From: Pseudomonas aeruginosa PAO1
GTDB taxonomy: Bacteria; Pseudomonadota; Gammaproteobacteria; Pseudomonadales; Pseudomonadaceae
Assembly: GCF_000006765.1 (NCBI RefSeq)
Contig: NC_002516.2
DNA: 64,000 nt
Strand: one strand, 5' to 3'
Shown: positions 48,706-54,645 of the stretch, piece by piece
How the letters are laid out: the number at the start of each line of letters is the position of its first letter
Position numbering within the stretch: position 1 is the stretch's first letter
Translations under genes and position numbers: made by a program
The notes under the pieces: generated by a model
What the model was told of the DNA's origin: nothing
Seen by the model: the letters and a program-made list of their open reading frames with translations, nothing else
Databases searched by the model: none

Positions 48706-50245
<1,540 letters not shown>

Positions 50246-50280
50246 GGCGGGAGCGACCCGAAGGGCCGCCTGAGCGGGCG

Positions 50281-50309
50281 ATTATAGCGGCGCCACATGA
50301 AACTCCCAA
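50281..50309 (-). promoter_or_regulatory. Sigma70-type promoter for the sahH leader
   Basis: Minus strand TTGGGA (50309-50304), 17-nt spacer, perfect TATAAT (50286-50281); implies a start site near 50274, just upstream of the riboswitch. Confidence 0.65.
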
Positions 50310-50403
50310 GTCACCCCTGATACGCCGCTCGTCGCCGTGCGTCGCGTCCTCGGGCTGCGGCGATGCACCGCAGCGCAGAAGCGCGGGGAATTTGCGGGTC
50401 AGG

Positions 50404-50838
50404 ATGCTAGAGTGCGCGGTCATGAGAATCGCTCCCATCTCCCGCTCGCCGCTGCTGCAGTGGCTGAGCTTCGCCCTCTGTGCCTGCGTGCTGGTCAACG
50501 CGCTGGCTTGCGGCGTCCTGCACCTGCAGGCGCTGGGAGTGGGCAGCGACAAAGGGCAGAAGGCCAGCGTCGGGCTGTTCTGCGTCGCCGGTGCCAGCCA
50601 ATGGCTATCCCTGGATCCCGACGACGGGGCCGCCGGCGATCCGGCACCGATCAATCCCCAGTTGCCGATGAGCTGCCCGATGTGCAGCGCCCTGGTGCTG
50701 TTCGTCGCGCTCGGGGTGATCTGGTCCTGGCGCTTGCAACGGCGACGCCATGCACGTTTCCGCCCGCCCGCCACGCGCGAGCCGGTGCCGCCCCGGTACG
50801 TCTGGCCGCCGGCCAACCCGCGCGCTTCCCCCGCCTGA
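50404..50838 (+). CDS. DUF2946 family protein (CruR-like leader ORF with CxxC and C-terminal PRASP)
   Basis: TM segment, LFCVAG, CPMC, second hydrophobic stretch, C-terminus WPPANPRASPA; upstream of a TonB receptor and a PepSY gene; start 50404 or 50422. Confidence 0.8.
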   Translation: MLECAVMRIAPISRSPLLQWLSFALCACVLVNALACGVLHLQALGVGSDKGQKASVGLFCVAGASQWLSLDPDDGAAGDPAPINPQLPMSCPMCSALVLFVALGVIWSWRLQRRRHARFRPPATREPVPPRYVWPPANPRASPA

Positions 50839-50963
50839 TCCTGAACGCCCGCCGCGCCGGGCATTTGCATCCGTCGCCCGTCCTGCCTCGTCCGCGCAGC
50901 GCTCGCCGCTGTCCATCCGGGCGAGGCGGGCGTGCCCACCATGCCTTGCTTCAGGATCGCTCG

Positions 50964-53156
50964 ATGAAAAAGCACTCCACGGCCCGCCGCGTCCTCGCGC
51001 TGGGTCTCAACCTCACCCTGGCCGGCGTTCCGGCCTTGCTCTGGGCCGATGAGGAACCCACCGAACTGCCCGCCCTCACCGTCAGCGCCGGCGCCGCCGG
51101 GGAAACCCCGCCGGCCCTCGATCTCGACGACAGCGCCGGCGGCGGCTCGCGCCTGGGCCTGAGCCTGCGCGAGACTCCCGGCTCGGTAAGCGTGGCCAAC
51201 CGTGCCAGCTTCGAGCGGCGCGGCCTGCGCAGCACCCAGGACATCGCCAACAGCCTGCCCGGCGTGAACGCCTCGGCGCCGCCCGGCTTCGGCGGCTTCG
51301 TCACCTACCGCGGCTTCAGCTCGAACCAGGTCAACCAGTTGTTCAACGGCATTCCGGTGCAATACAGCAGCGCCATGCGTCCGCTGGACGACTGGATCGT
51401 CGACCGCGTCGAGCTGGTCGGCGGTCCGTCCTCCTTCCTCAACGGCGCCGGTGCCGTCGGCGGCTCGCTGGACTACATCAGCAAGCTCGCCGACCGCTAC
51501 GGCGATTTCATGGAAGGCCGGGTGCGCTACGGCAGCTACGACGATTCGGAAGTCGCCTTCGGCTTCAACCAGGCCCTGGGCATCGGCCCCGAGCCGAAGC
51601 ACTTCGTGCGCCTGGACGTCAGCCGCAGCGGCGGCAACGGCTACGTCGACCGCAATTCGCGCGAATCGTGGAACGTCGCTTTCTCCCTGCTCAGCGACCT
51701 GACCCCGGACCTTTCCCACACCCTGGCCCTGGAGTACCAGGACGAGCAGGAAGACAGCCCCTACTGGGGCACACCGGTGCTCAATCCCTACGCCGGCGAG
51801 CTGAAGATCGACAAGAGCCGTCGCCGCGAGAACTACAACGTCGCCGATGGCCGCTACGAACAGCGCGTGCGCTGGCTGCGCTCGATCCTCGAATACCGGG
51901 TCAGCGACAGCACGCGCTGGCGCAACACCTTCTACCACTACGACGCCGAGCGCGATTACCGCAACCTCGAGACCTACCGCTACAACGCCGACAACAGCGG
52001 GGTGGTGCGCTCCAACGCATTCCTCCAGCGCCACGACCAGCAGCTCAACGGCAACCGCTTCGAGCTACAGCACAGCCAGCCGCTGTTCGGACTGGCCAGC
52101 GACTGGGCGCTGGGCTTCGACTACAGCATCAACAAGCAGACGCGCTTCCCGAGTACCGCCTCCGGGCCGTTCGGTACGGTCGATCCGGCCAGTTTCGAGC
52201 CGGGCCACTTCTACGACCTGCCGGGCATGCGTCCCGGCCACCGGAAGGACCGCAGCAACGAGGTGCGCACCAGCGCGTTGTTCGCCGAGAACCGCCTGGG
52301 CCTGACCGACGAGCTGTCGCTGGTCACCGGGCTGCGCTACGACCACCTCGACCTCGACGTGCGCAACCATCGGGTACCCGACAAGGACAATCCCGCACAC
52401 TTCGAACGGCGCTGGGACGTGGTCACCGGGCGCGCCGGGCTGGTCTACCAGTTCACCCCGCACGCCAACGTCTACCTGCAATACAGTACCGCCGCCGACC
52501 CGCCGGGCGGGGTGCTGACCAGCGCCAGCTTCGGCCAGGTCCGCGACTACGACCTGTCCACCGGCGACCAGTGGGAGCTGGGCAGCAAGTTCGATTTCCT
52601 CGACGGTCGCGGCAGTGCCACCCTGGCCGCCTACCGCATCGTCCGCCGGGACTTCTCGGTGGCCGACCCGAACAACCCCAACCTCAGCGTGCCGGTGGGC
52701 CAGCAGACCTCCAGGGGCATCGAGGCCGCCGCCTCCCTGCGGATCACCCCGAAGCTGCTGGCCGAGGGCAATTTCGCCTGGGTCGACGCGCAGTACGACG
52801 AGTTCACCGAGAACGTCGGCGGCGTCGCCGTCTCGCGTAAGGGCAAGACGCCGCCGAACGTGCCGGAGCGGGTCGGCAACCTGTGGCTGACCTACGACTT
52901 CGACCCGGCCTGGCAGGGCGGGGTGGACGCGCGCTACGTGTCCTCGGTGTACGCCAACAACGCCAACACCTGGCACGTGCCGTCCTACACGGTCTACGGG
53001 ACTTTCCTCAGCTACCGGCTGGACGAGCGCACGCGGATCACCGGGCGCGTGCGCAACCTCACCGACGAGGTCTACGCGCGCTTCGTGCAGAGCACGCCGC
53101 TGTACTACGTCGGCGACCCGCGCACCTTCGAGCTGAGCGTGCAGACGCGCTTCTGA
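50964..53156 (+). CDS. TonB-dependent outer membrane receptor (metal/metallophore uptake)
   Basis: AGGAT RBS; signal peptide; TonB box ELPALTVSA; plug LSLRETPGSVSV..IANSLPGV..RGF..DRVELVGGPSSFLNG; C-terminal RTFELSVQTRF; 730 aa. Confidence 0.95.
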   Translation: MKKHSTARRVLALGLNLTLAGVPALLWADEEPTELPALTVSAGAAGETPPALDLDDSAGGGSRLGLSLRETPGSVSVANRASFERRGLRSTQDIANSLPGVNASAPPGFGGFVTYRGFSSNQVNQLFNGIPVQYSSAMRPLDDWIVDRVELVGGPSSFLNGAGAVGGSLDYISKLADRYGDFMEGRVRYGSYDDSEVAFGFNQALGIGPEPKHFVRLDVSRSGGNGYVDRNSRESWNVAFSLLSDLTPDLSHTLALEYQDEQEDSPYWGTPVLNPYAGELKIDKSRRRENYNVADGRYEQRVRWLRSILEYRVSDSTRWRNTFYHYDAERDYRNLETYRYNADNSGVVRSNAFLQRHDQQLNGNRFELQHSQPLFGLASDWALGFDYSINKQTRFPSTASGPFGTVDPASFEPGHFYDLPGMRPGHRKDRSNEVRTSALFAENRLGLTDELSLVTGLRYDHLDLDVRNHRVPDKDNPAHFERRWDVVTGRAGLVYQFTPHANVYLQYSTAADPPGGVLTSASFGQVRDYDLSTGDQWELGSKFDFLDGRGSATLAAYRIVRRDFSVADPNNPNLSVPVGQQTSRGIEAAASLRITPKLLAEGNFAWVDAQYDEFTENVGGVAVSRKGKTPPNVPERVGNLWLTYDFDPAWQGGVDARYVSSVYANNANTWHVPSYTVYGTFLSYRLDERTRITGRVRNLTDEVYARFVQSTPLYYVGDPRTFELSVQTRF

Positions 53157-53166
53157 GGAGTCGTCG

Positions 53167-54645
53167 ATGAAACGCTACCTGTACCTGTGGCACCGCTGGC
53201 TGGGCATCGGCTGCTGCCTGCTGATGGTGCTCTGGTTCGTCTCCGGCATGGTCATGCTGTATGTCGGCTATCCCAAGCTGACTCCGCTGGAACGCCTGGC
53301 CCACCTGCCCGAGCTGGACGGCTGCGAGGCCTGCGTACCGCTGCGGACGGCCCTCGCCGGCAGCGATGGAAAGACCCCGCGGAGCATCCGGCTGGCCAGC
53401 GTAGGAGGCCTGCCGACCTACCTGCTGGACGATGCCGACGGACGCACGCGTGCGCTGGCGGCGCGCGACGGCCGACCGCTGGCGGTGGACGCGGACAGGG
53501 TGCTGGCTTCGGCCCGTGCTTTCAGCGGCGAAGTACCGATGCAGTTGCAAGGGCGGTTCGAGGAAGACGCCTGGACCCATACCCGCAACCTCGATCCGCA
53601 CCGGCCGCTATGGCGGGTGCAGACCGCGGACGAGCAGGGCCGGCTGCTCTACCTGTCCTCGCAGACCGGCGAGGTGGTACGCGACGCCAGCCGCCGGGAG
53701 CGTGCCTGGAACTGGCTCGGCGCCTGGTTGCACTGGCTCTATCCGCTGCGCGGCGGCTGGTTCGACGGGCAGTGGGCGAACCTGGTGATCGGCCTGTCGC
53801 TGCTGGCGACCCTGGTGACCGTCCTCGGCATCCTCGTCGGCCTGCTCCGCTGGCGCTTCCGCAAGCCCTACCGCAGCGGCTCGCGCTCGCCCTATGCGGG
53901 CGGTTTCCAGCGCTGGCACCACCTCGCCGGCCTGCTCTTCGGCGCGCTGGTGCTGAGCTGGATCTTCAGCGGGCTGATGTCGATGAATCCGTGGAACCTG
54001 TTCGGCCGCGGCACGCCGCTCGACCTCGCGGCCTACCAGGGCGGTAGCTGGGACCGGGCGCTGCCCGCCGGACTGGAGGCGGACGCTGTCCTGCGACGCT
54101 TGCGTGCCGCCGGGTTGCGGGTGCGCGAGCTGGAGTGGCGGGCGCTCGACGGCGAGCCCTATGCGCTCGGGCGCAGCGCCAGCGGCAACAGCCTGCTGCT
54201 GACGGCGGATGGCGAAATCCTCCGCGAGCTACCCGCGGATCGCCTGCTGGCGGCGGCTCGCGCGCTGCTGCCGGGCGTGCCGATGCAGGCCGAACGGTTG
54301 GAACGCTACGACTTCTATTACTACCCGCGCGAAGAACACAGCATGATGGGCTACCTGGAGCGGCGCCTGCCGGTCTGGCGCCTGCGTTTCGACGATTCCC
54401 GGCATACCTGGGTGCACCTGGATCCCTACAGCGGCGCGGTGGTTGGCGTGCTCGACGACGGTCGGCGCGGCAGCCGCTGGCTGTTTTCCCTGTTGCATAG
54501 CTGGGACTGGCTGCCGCTGCTGACCCGGCGTCCGCTGTGGGACCTGTGGATGCTCGGTTTCAGCCTCGGCGGCCTGGTGGTCTGCGCCAGCGGCTGCTGG
54601 ATCGGCTGGCGTCGCCTGCGCGGCCGCCGTCCGAAGCGTCGCTGA
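53167..54645 (+). CDS. PepSY-associated TM helix domain protein (putative inner-membrane metal reductase)
   Basis: YLWHRWLG, WLHWLY, RWHHLAGL, SLLHSWDW His motifs with periplasmic PepSY segments; GAGGAG RBS. Confidence 0.88.
   Translation: MKRYLYLWHRWLGIGCCLLMVLWFVSGMVMLYVGYPKLTPLERLAHLPELDGCEACVPLRTALAGSDGKTPRSIRLASVGGLPTYLLDDADGRTRALAARDGRPLAVDADRVLASARAFSGEVPMQLQGRFEEDAWTHTRNLDPHRPLWRVQTADEQGRLLYLSSQTGEVVRDASRRERAWNWLGAWLHWLYPLRGGWFDGQWANLVIGLSLLATLVTVLGILVGLLRWRFRKPYRSGSRSPYAGGFQRWHHLAGLLFGALVLSWIFSGLMSMNPWNLFGRGTPLDLAAYQGGSWDRALPAGLEADAVLRRLRAAGLRVRELEWRALDGEPYALGRSASGNSLLLTADGEILRELPADRLLAAARALLPGVPMQAERLERYDFYYYPREEHSMMGYLERRLPVWRLRFDDSRHTWVHLDPYSGAVVGVLDDGRRGSRWLFSLLHSWDWLPLLTRRPLWDLWMLGFSLGGLVVCASGCWIGWRRLRGRRPKRR

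Follow-up and report, generated by a model that had tools for sequence, protein, structure and literature searches.

The window analyzed here is a stretch of 64,000 nucleotides of Pseudomonas aeruginosa PAO1 DNA. Its plus strand carries the cruR-crtA-PepSY_TM operon PA0433-PA0435, which is a member of the known CruR/CrtA system. The subjects of this report are the leader open reading frame (ORF) cruR, its predicted ribosome arrest motif, and an RNA helix predicted to hide the Shine-Dalgarno (SD) sequence belonging to the next gene, crtA. The leader ORF is followed by a 125-nt intergenic region (IGR), by crtA, by a 10-nt gap, and by the PepSY_TM gene PA0435 (Table 1). This layout matches that of the Bordetella operon, in which bp2921 is the counterpart of PA0435; bp2921 has reportedly been renamed CrpH, judging from the title of one paper only. 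Proteins that carry the DUF2946 annotation in P. aeruginosa share 96% identity with the leader, and a word-indexed homologue search with the leader returned matches only from P. aeruginosa. For the receptor, the identity to a cluster of P. aeruginosa TonB-dependent receptors is 98%.

In the literature, PA0433 is listed as a DUF2946 protein and PA0434 as a TonB-dependent receptor (PMC9431628). PA0434 was named CrtA and is the receptor for pyocins SX1 and SX2, and its mRNA was reduced 2.5-fold with CuSO4 and increased 5.4-fold with the chelator TETA, with no effect of iron or zinc (PMC10422930). An earlier note on this DNA, made from the sequence letters, had proposed that the receptor is switched on when metal is scarce, and the induction of crtA(Pa) by copper chelation and its repression by copper bear this out. 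PA0434 groups with Bordetella BfrG/CrtA in one cluster of TonB-dependent transporters, and cruR heads more than 40% of crtA operons (PMC12914433). The operon most likely serves copper acquisition and is most likely controlled, after transcription initiation, by its own leader peptide. Because CrtA is a copper-acquisition route of P. aeruginosa and pyocins SX1 and SX2 enter through it, its control sets the copper supply to the respiratory oxidases as well as pyocin sensitivity.

The leader ORF and its predicted arrest motif

The leader and its downstream region were compared with 80 orthologous loci, each species being represented by one genome; the records bear the name Pseudomonas, apart from L019, which is titled Janthinobacterium. 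The receptors of these loci are 62-65% identical to PA0434, save that of P. paraeruginosa (98%). The leader matched the Pfam family PF11162 with E = 5.8e-10 and 40.4 bits (cutoff 23.7), residues 18-137 aligning with positions 4-117 of the 117 positions of the profile. Reading and translating its 3' end gave CGC-GCT-TCC-CCC-GCC-TGA, that is R-A-S-P-A-stop (50821-50838), and upstream of it the motif CPMC, both as claimed beforehand. The gap between CPMC and RASP is exactly 45 residues in PA0433 and 44-46 residues in each of the 80 orthologous loci. The Pfam match, the CxxC motif, this spacing, and the TonB receptor and PepSY_TM genes downstream together uphold the assignment of the leader to the CruR-type DUF2946 upstream ORFs.

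The start of the leader had to be revised. Position 50404, proposed in the earlier note, lies 18 nt too far upstream; ATG 50422 is most likely the start, because the orthologues align from Met 50422 and because 50404 falls in a conserved element resembling an extended -10 promoter motif. The pattern TG-n-TA(A/G)AGT, then 7-8 GC-rich nt, then ATG, without an SD sequence, was present in 20/20 clade representatives, in which the flanks were otherwise divergent. A consensus promoter scan did not flag the -10-like element at 50405-50413. From the placement of this element just before the ATG and the lack of an SD sequence, the cruR mRNA looks leaderless or nearly so, and transcription would start at or beside ATG 50422. 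The P. aeruginosa mRNA would then be unlike the Bordetella cruR mRNA, which has a 5' untranslated region of 45 nt.

Directly after CPMC the leader has the hydrophobic stretch SALVLFVALGVIWSW. In this part of the leader (50686-50730, residues 89-103) the stretch, which is transmembrane-like, is followed by an Arg-rich segment, and the arrangement is found in aeruginosa-type and many RASP-type leaders. At the point of arrest, the hydrophobic stretch would be at the tunnel exit, and we speculate that membrane insertion force might help to release the arrest.

The predicted arrest module ends in R-A-S-P. The literal RAPP motif is absent from PA0433 and RASP occupies the homologous position, so that PA0433 has neither the R-A/G-P-P core of the ApdA/ApdP class nor the SecM-type RAGP. 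Bordetella CruR(Bp) arrested ribosomes in vitro, and the toeprint placed the third motif codon in the P site and the fourth in the A site (PMC12992588); by analogy, the P site of a ribosome stalled on the P. aeruginosa leader is predicted to be occupied by Ser (50827-29) and the A site by Pro (50830-32). In a set of 115 distinct leaders, the residues R(-9), P(-1), R(0), and A(+1) were invariant, W(-6) was present in 114 and P(-5) in 113. Motif position 3 (+2) was Pro in 78 of these leaders and Ser in 37, with no other residue. RASP was found in 20 of the 26 family representatives with a complete motif. On the receptor tree it was present in all deep Pseudomonas lineages, with only two changes, in which RAPP arose separately in the fluorescens group and in L028.

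Decay of the motif would not leave just one alternative residue, which argues that RASP has not decayed. Loss of the motif silences the Bordetella operon, yet CrtA of P. aeruginosa is both expressed and regulated. On these grounds together, RASP probably works within its own upstream context, perhaps giving an arrest that is weaker and easier to release. It seems to be a stable variant that is undescribed in the literature searched. If RASP is functional, the known sequence rules for R-A-x-P ribosome arrest widen.

Some DUF2946 leaders end ...N-P-R-A-P right at the stop codon (P0137, P0142-P0144, P0148, P0149, P0152, P0159, and P0161; loci L089 and L090). The predicted A site of a stalled ribosome would hold the stop codon in these leaders, not Pro, and any arrest would be at termination.

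Table 1. Positions of the features of the cruR-crtA locus in the window
Feature	Position	Strand	Basis
Extended -10-like element TGcTAGAGT, 8 nt before the leader ATG	50405-50413	+	Conserved across clades
cruR(Pa) / PA0433, DUF2946 leader ORF, 138 aa, start most likely as given	50422-50838	+	Pfam PF11162 and orthologue alignment
CPMC, candidate Cu-binding CxxC, residues 85-88 counted from Met 50422	50674-50685	+	Translation
C>G tract, about 50% C and about 28% G, candidate rut region	50760-50890	+	78-nt sliding windows
Predicted arrest module P-P-R-Y-V-W-P-P-A-N-P-R-A-S-P	50788-50832	+	Conservation
Anti-SD arm UGAUCCUGAA, stop codon and 7 non-coding nt	50836-50845	+	Pairs with 50950-59
GC-rich central IGR hairpin without U tract, enclosed by the anti-SD helix	50876-50935	+	Minimum free energy pairs, pair probabilities 0.66-1.0
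SD arm UUCAGGAUCG, holding the crtA SD AGGA (50953-56), 7 nt before ATG 50964	50950-50959	+	Sequence, pair probabilities
crtA(Pa) / PA0434, TonB-dependent transporter, 730 aa	50964-53156	+	Plug and TonB barrel domains
PA0435, PepSY_TM inner-membrane protein, 492 aa	53167-54645	+	Pfam PF03929

The predicted anti-SD helix in the P. aeruginosa RNA and its conservation

The sequences GATCCTGAA (50837-45) and TTCAGGATC (50950-58), the second of which holds the AGGA upstream of ATG 50964, are exact reverse complements of each other. An inverted-repeat search returned the identical pair (9 nt, 100%), so the complementarity claimed earlier is confirmed, and a G-U pair extends it to 50836/50959. The helix therefore has 10 bp including one G-U, and its 5' arm spans +9 to +18, counted from the predicted P-site codon's first base. 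Whether 171 nt or 629 nt were folded, probabilities of 0.97-1.0 were obtained for the eight pairs 50837-44/50951-58, with weaker pairs at the ends of the helix (0.78-0.79 for 50845/50950 and 0.38-0.74 for U-G 50836/50959). The SD bases are predicted to be unpaired with a probability of about 0 in the free RNA. In the minimum free energy structure, weaker outer pairs extend the helix and join the arrest codons (50824-33) to the crtA start region (50962-73).

The duplex between the stall-proximal zone and the SD zone had an energy of -17.1 kcal/mol, in comparison with -9.2 +/- 2.4 kcal/mol for 2000 dinucleotide shuffles (p = 0.006). The anti-SD site was the single best SD complement of 500 16-nt windows over the leader and the IGR.

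We modelled the footprint of a stalled ribosome with the P site at 50827, covering -12 to +14, that is to about 50841, in line with the footprint geometry that had been proposed. Occlusion by this footprint lowered the modelled opening cost of the crtA ribosome-binding site (RBS) from 12.2 to 6.4 kcal/mol (gain 5.7), and an equal footprint placed in the middle of the IGR as a control lowered it to 11.1 kcal/mol (gain 1.1). By computation, the locus thus has the arrangement expected for RBS shielding, an SD helix with its other arm at the leading edge of the stalled ribosome.

A second helix, 50846-53 with 50925-32, had been proposed beside the first and was rejected. The complement is real and lies within a 17-nt inverted repeat of 88% identity; its predicted pair probability was 0, and forcing it cost 5.6 kcal/mol. 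The sequence GGCGGGCG pairs preferentially with 50879-87. The central IGR hairpin is a possible pause or termination zone.

The comparison with other loci showed that the anti-SD helix is conserved in position across Pseudomonas with changing, compensating sequence. A leader ending W-P-x-x-N/H-P-R-A-(P/S)-P plus 0-11 residues precedes the receptor in 79 of the 80 loci. For each locus, the region between -30 and +60 relative to the predicted P-site codon was searched for the longest stem that it could form with the 20 nt ahead of the receptor start. The longest stem with the SD zone started at +7 to +13 from the P-site codon in 72/81 loci, and at +10 in 54. This position was kept over different SD types. 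The aeruginosa and fluorescens-type loci have UCAGG(A) as their SD, three other clades have GGAAG or GGACG, and the donghuensis/putida-like clade has CCAGAG; the matching arms are CCUGA(A/G)U..., (A/G)CUUCC or UGUCCAC, and UUCUGG, respectively. The SD type changed at least three times on the receptor tree. Each arm paired better with its own SD than did arms of other SD types (Wilcoxon 3e-5), and it also paired better with its own SD than with foreign SDs (Wilcoxon 1e-3).

Compensatory changes were found at single loci as well. In L028, GGAAG/CUUCC is changed to GGACG/GUCC; in L023, AUUCAGG/CCUGAAU to CUUCAGG/CCUGAAG; in L011 and L032, GCA/UGU to GAA/UUU; and in L018 a G-U pair is turned into G-C.

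The arm keeps its distance to the arrest codons, not to the stop codon. In leaders with a tail of 10 residues it remains beside the arrest codons, within coding sequence whose amino acids are non-conserved (DASL, FYFP, SSFL, LSTA), and does not follow the stop codon, which lies 30 nt further away. In L080 the arm is after the stop codon and the offset is unchanged. The sequence UUCAGGAU is kept between the aeruginosa and fluorescens groups although the IGRs are otherwise unalignable, and conservation of the UUC before AGGA in such IGRs is not explained by SD function alone. Folding with footprint occlusion in the 80 loci gave a median gain of about 2.4 kcal/mol, in comparison with about 0.3 for the control.

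We also examined distant DUF2946 loci. A full phmmer search with the leader gave 43 matches; 12 were used to obtain distant loci, and in 11 of these a downstream gene was called. Two of them, each before a TonB receptor, have stems close to the arrest codons: L081 one of 11 bp (+5 to +15) and L085 one of 7 bp (+11 to +17). In L089 (8 bp), a TonB-receptor locus, and L084 (7 bp), the SD pairs with the R-A-P or R-A-S codons themselves, and L090 and L093 have stems of 6-7 bp upstream of the P site yet within the footprint. With L083 borderline, an SD complement inside the stall footprint was present in 6-7 of the 11 loci. In these sequences the theme of SD pairing recurs outside Pseudomonas and is not universal. 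Two of the distant loci have further genes of note. L087 (2501-3409) carries two tandem DUF2946 genes before a TonB receptor, with a FecR-like gene upstream, and in L081 (1-2604) a MerR-family regulator and a P-type ATPase lie immediately upstream of the cruR-receptor-PepSY operon.

Proposed mechanism and competing explanations

The closest known system is CruR-BfrG(CrtA)-Bp2921 of B. pertussis (Roy et al. 2022, PMC9426467; PMC12914433). In Bordetella, the CruR DUF2946 upstream ORF stalls ribosomes at RAPP in the absence of copper, which prevents Rho-dependent termination launched from a C>G tract; copper sensed via the CxxC motif lifts the stall, whereupon termination by Rho takes place in the IGR (PMC9426467). 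The P. aeruginosa operon likewise begins with a DUF2946 leader that has a CxxC motif, a spacing of 45 residues, and R-A-x-P near its C terminus. It also shares the long GC-rich IGR, the C>G tract at the leader 3' end, the orthologous CrtA-type transporter followed by PepSY_TM, and the copper repression. It differs in its RASP core in place of RAPP, in having one residue after the motif, not three, and in the conserved anti-SD helix at the leading edge of the predicted stalled ribosome, a helix that the literature searched does not describe for CruR.

The second studied DUF2946-family leader is CutF, upstream of cutO in Rhodobacter capsulatus (PMC9973294; bioRxiv 10.1101/2025.02.05.636593). CutF also has a C-terminal stalling motif and an anti-SD stem that shields the RBS of the next gene and is melted by the stalled ribosome. 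However, it is opposite in sign, since copper brings about the stall on CutF and thereby turns on an oxidase that serves detoxification. The CutF peptide further has CxxxC and PPP motifs, needs a signal peptide and EF-P, and uses a short local stem-loop, whereas the helix here spans about 105 nt. The output reported for CruR is Rho and that reported for CutF is RBS shielding, and the CutF authors stated that how DUF2946 leaders regulate their target genes is largely unknown. CruR-type operons may combine both outputs, as this locus suggests.

More distant parallels exist. SecM, upstream of secA in E. coli, shares a C-terminal R-A-x-P core (RAGP, x-tRNA occupying the P site and Pro-tRNA the A site) and an SD-sequestering helix disrupted by the stall; it differs in release by pulling of the Sec translocon and not by metal, in its unrelated tunnel-contact sequence, and in a classical model without Rho. 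ApdA, ApdP, and ApcA (PMC7897499, PMC10951233, PMC12992588) are small exported or membrane proteins with a near-C-terminal R-A-x-P and an irreplaceable Arg upstream of a regulated gene. Unlike these, the P. aeruginosa leader has Ser as the third residue, and the R-Y-x-W-P-x-x-N-P module is specific to CruR-type leaders. In TnaC-tnaAB and SpeFL-speF, a leader-peptide stall near the stop codon governs access of Rho to a C-rich tract. In TnaC and SpeFL the ligand induces the stall, whereas the proposal for the P. aeruginosa leader is, as in Bordetella, that the ligand relieves it, and a helix sequestering the SD comes in addition.

The C>G tract of P. aeruginosa runs from the 3' end of the leader through the IGR's first half. 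Its maximum C-G difference in 78-nt windows was 25.6%, in comparison with a 95th percentile of 17.9% inside crtA. A similar C>G bubble was present in 9/9 clade representatives, and in Bordetella the rut site was mapped to the equivalent tract at the cruR 3' end. In a published transcriptome the log2 fold change was 1.7 for PA0434 and 0.7 for PA0433, and a published transcriptional PA0434 reporter gave no copper response, for which its authors cite the detection limit as a possible cause. These expression data fit an attenuation between PA0433 and PA0434, and are compatible alike with Rho termination and with decay of untranslated mRNA.

On balance we lean slightly towards a dual model, in which the stall both exposes the crtA SD and blocks Rho. 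Translation of the leader mRNA, which is probably leaderless, would follow close behind RNA polymerase. When copper is low, the ribosome would arrest on ...R-Y-x-W-P-x-x-N-P-R-A-S, where Ser would occupy the P site and Pro the A site. The arrested ribosome would cover the mRNA to about 50841 and keep the 10-bp anti-SD helix open in its 5' half, along with the weaker outer pairs, so that the AGGA SD would be freed and crtA translated; the stalled ribosome, and then the ribosomes on crtA, would exclude Rho from 50760-50890. When copper is sufficient, it would bind CPMC, 45 residues upstream at the tunnel exit, and release the arrest. The ribosome would then terminate at UGA 50836-38 and leave, the helix would re-form and hide the SD, and Rho would terminate or polarise transcription in the IGR or early crtA.

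The interpretation given in the earlier note is partly supported. Its model joined the sensing logic of CruR to an output of the CutF/SecM type and omitted Rho, the sole output demonstrated for a CruR. For the unmasking of the SD as the output, the helix is robust, with a probability of about 1, conserved in position, and compensated across SD types; the published CruR output is Rho-dependent termination, and the C>G tract had been overlooked. The note also knew of no description of the helix in P. aeruginosa. No description of an anti-SD helix for CruR-type operons was found in the literature searched, but RBS shielding melted by a stall is already described for CutF. The stall-site-linked anti-SD arm and the probably leaderless leader mRNA seem, like the RASP variant, to be undescribed in that literature.

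More tentatively, the arrest site and the anti-SD arm, about 10 nt after the P-site codon, may form one conserved unit in crtA-type CruR operons, with RBS unmasking, of the kind seen in SecM and CutF, as the primary output and Rho termination as its consequence. This possibility, to which we give only limited credence, would also mean that R-A-S-P, its Ser-tRNA lying in the P site, is a natural arrest core and an ancestral one, and that the mRNA is leaderless.

Several observations weigh against the dual model. In saturation mutagenesis of ApcA, ApdA, and ApdP, the third-position Pro was irreplaceable, except by Gly in ApdP, and Ser abolished arrest in ApdA and ApdP (PMC12992588). Arrest at RASP is not predicted by these data and is argued from conservation only; the family-specific R-Y-x-W-P-x-x-N-P tunnel segment would have to enable it. 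For the P. aeruginosa locus, the published data are expression data only. In the CAGGA-type group (46 distinct sequences), the core 5 bp are near-invariant and covariation was marginal (a score of 0.113, which 32/500 shuffles reached, in comparison with 0.099 for shuffled sequences). The register of the helix in this group is clear, with 82% of cells paired in comparison with at most 46% with a slid partner. The occlusion gain was about 0 in the donghuensis/putida-like clade and in L080, where the stems have 5-6 bp or are out-competed. The clades are related, so that combined p-values (e.g. Fisher 9e-8) overstate their independence. The motif CCUGA can arise trivially from the terminal Ala codon GCC and UGA, and the fold of the whole IGR was not unusually stable (z = -1.17, which is uninformative at 67-75% GC); the anti-SD helix alone stands out. 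Outside Pseudomonas, 4/11 distant DUF2946 loci had no SD complement in the stall zone.

A competing complement of the SD is also present in other species. The sequence GCCUGGAUGCU, in the A-W-M-L codons of the leader signal peptide, forms a 10-bp complement (one G-U) to AGCAUUCAGG at the receptor SD. It lies about 345 nt upstream of the arrest codon in L004, L017, L037, L060, and most fluorescens-group loci, where it is stronger than the stall-proximal arm. Covariation was not seen for this complement, which is absent from P. aeruginosa.

The main uncertainties of the dual model are whether RASP arrests ribosomes and how control is shared between the helix and Rho. If Rho attenuation acted by itself, as in Bordetella CruR, the stalled ribosome would mask the rut site and stay near RNA polymerase, crtA translation would not be limited by the helix, and the helix would be a by-product of GCC-UGA and a conserved SD or would merely close the IGR structure. 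The status of Rho dependence as the sole mechanism demonstrated for a CruR, the C>G bubble kept in all clades, the copper regulation visible at the mRNA level, the different fold changes of PA0433 and PA0434, and the weak covariation within the CAGGA group all agree with this. However, the arm keeps its distance from the arrest codons across changes of the SD sequence and where the stop codon is displaced by 30 nt, which speaks against a by-product. The significant own-versus-foreign pairing, the compensatory changes, the UUC conserved before AGGA between unalignable IGRs, and a free RNA that is predicted never to expose the SD also speak for a role of the helix. Control by Rho without the helix is therefore unlikely in our estimate.

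Plain translational coupling would need no stall at RASP. A ribosome terminating with its P site at 50833 would, from geometry, cover the whole anti-SD arm, so that any ribosome finishing the leader would transiently melt the helix and crtA would be translated in step with the leader, and copper control would come from promoter regulation, mRNA stability, or another layer. The loss of ApdA and ApdP arrest on changing Pro to Ser suits this explanation, and a copper-responsive element upstream of the leader would supply the control. However, mere coupling has no need of a position 3 limited to Pro or Ser, of a conserved 15-residue module, or of a CxxC spacing held at 44-46 residues. The lack of a copper response of the transcriptional PA0434 reporter and the silencing of the Bordetella operon by motif loss also count against coupling, which we consider improbable.

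Chance complementarity in GC-rich DNA, or a crtA promoter inside the IGR that would make the leader irrelevant, is very improbable: the 67% GC content of the window, the unremarkable whole-IGR fold, and the second, GC-only helix, which looks like background, fit chance, but the shuffle test, the unique best site among 500 windows, the conservation of the helix across species, the plus-strand scan of 50100-51100 that found no promoter-like site, the absence of an internal transcription start site in Bordetella, and the lack of IGR divergence from P. paraeruginosa all contradict it. No intrinsic terminator was found in the IGR either. A separate IGR promoter had been named earlier as an explanation that would make the receptor independent of the leader.

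The divergence from P. paraeruginosa was analyzed further. Positions 50756-50991 (236 nt, from the arrest-peptide codons through the entire IGR to nucleotide 28 of crtA) are identical in the two species (L001), which overall differ by 3.1% here, with 4.3% in cruR, 2.2% in crtA, and 5.5% in the PepSY gene. This identity is suggestive only, since identical 158-nt windows between the two species are not rare (11% of windows).

Positions 50839-45 are non-coding, so the anti-SD arm is mutable there without a change in the peptide.

On one side the operon is flanked by the adenosylhomocysteinase gene (ahcY; 48706-50115, minus strand) and on the other by the cytosine deaminase gene codA, which we take to be the PAO1 gene order sahH / PA0433-PA0434-PA0435 / codA. 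An Rfam scan matched no family within the leader or the IGR, and its only match was the SAH riboswitch of the divergent ahcY. This riboswitch (50138-50243, minus strand; RF01057, 65 bits, E = 1.4e-11) is located in the 5' leader of the adenosylhomocysteinase gene, and a sigma-70-like promoter for the same gene lies at 50309-50281, a known arrangement that is unrelated to the leader switch.

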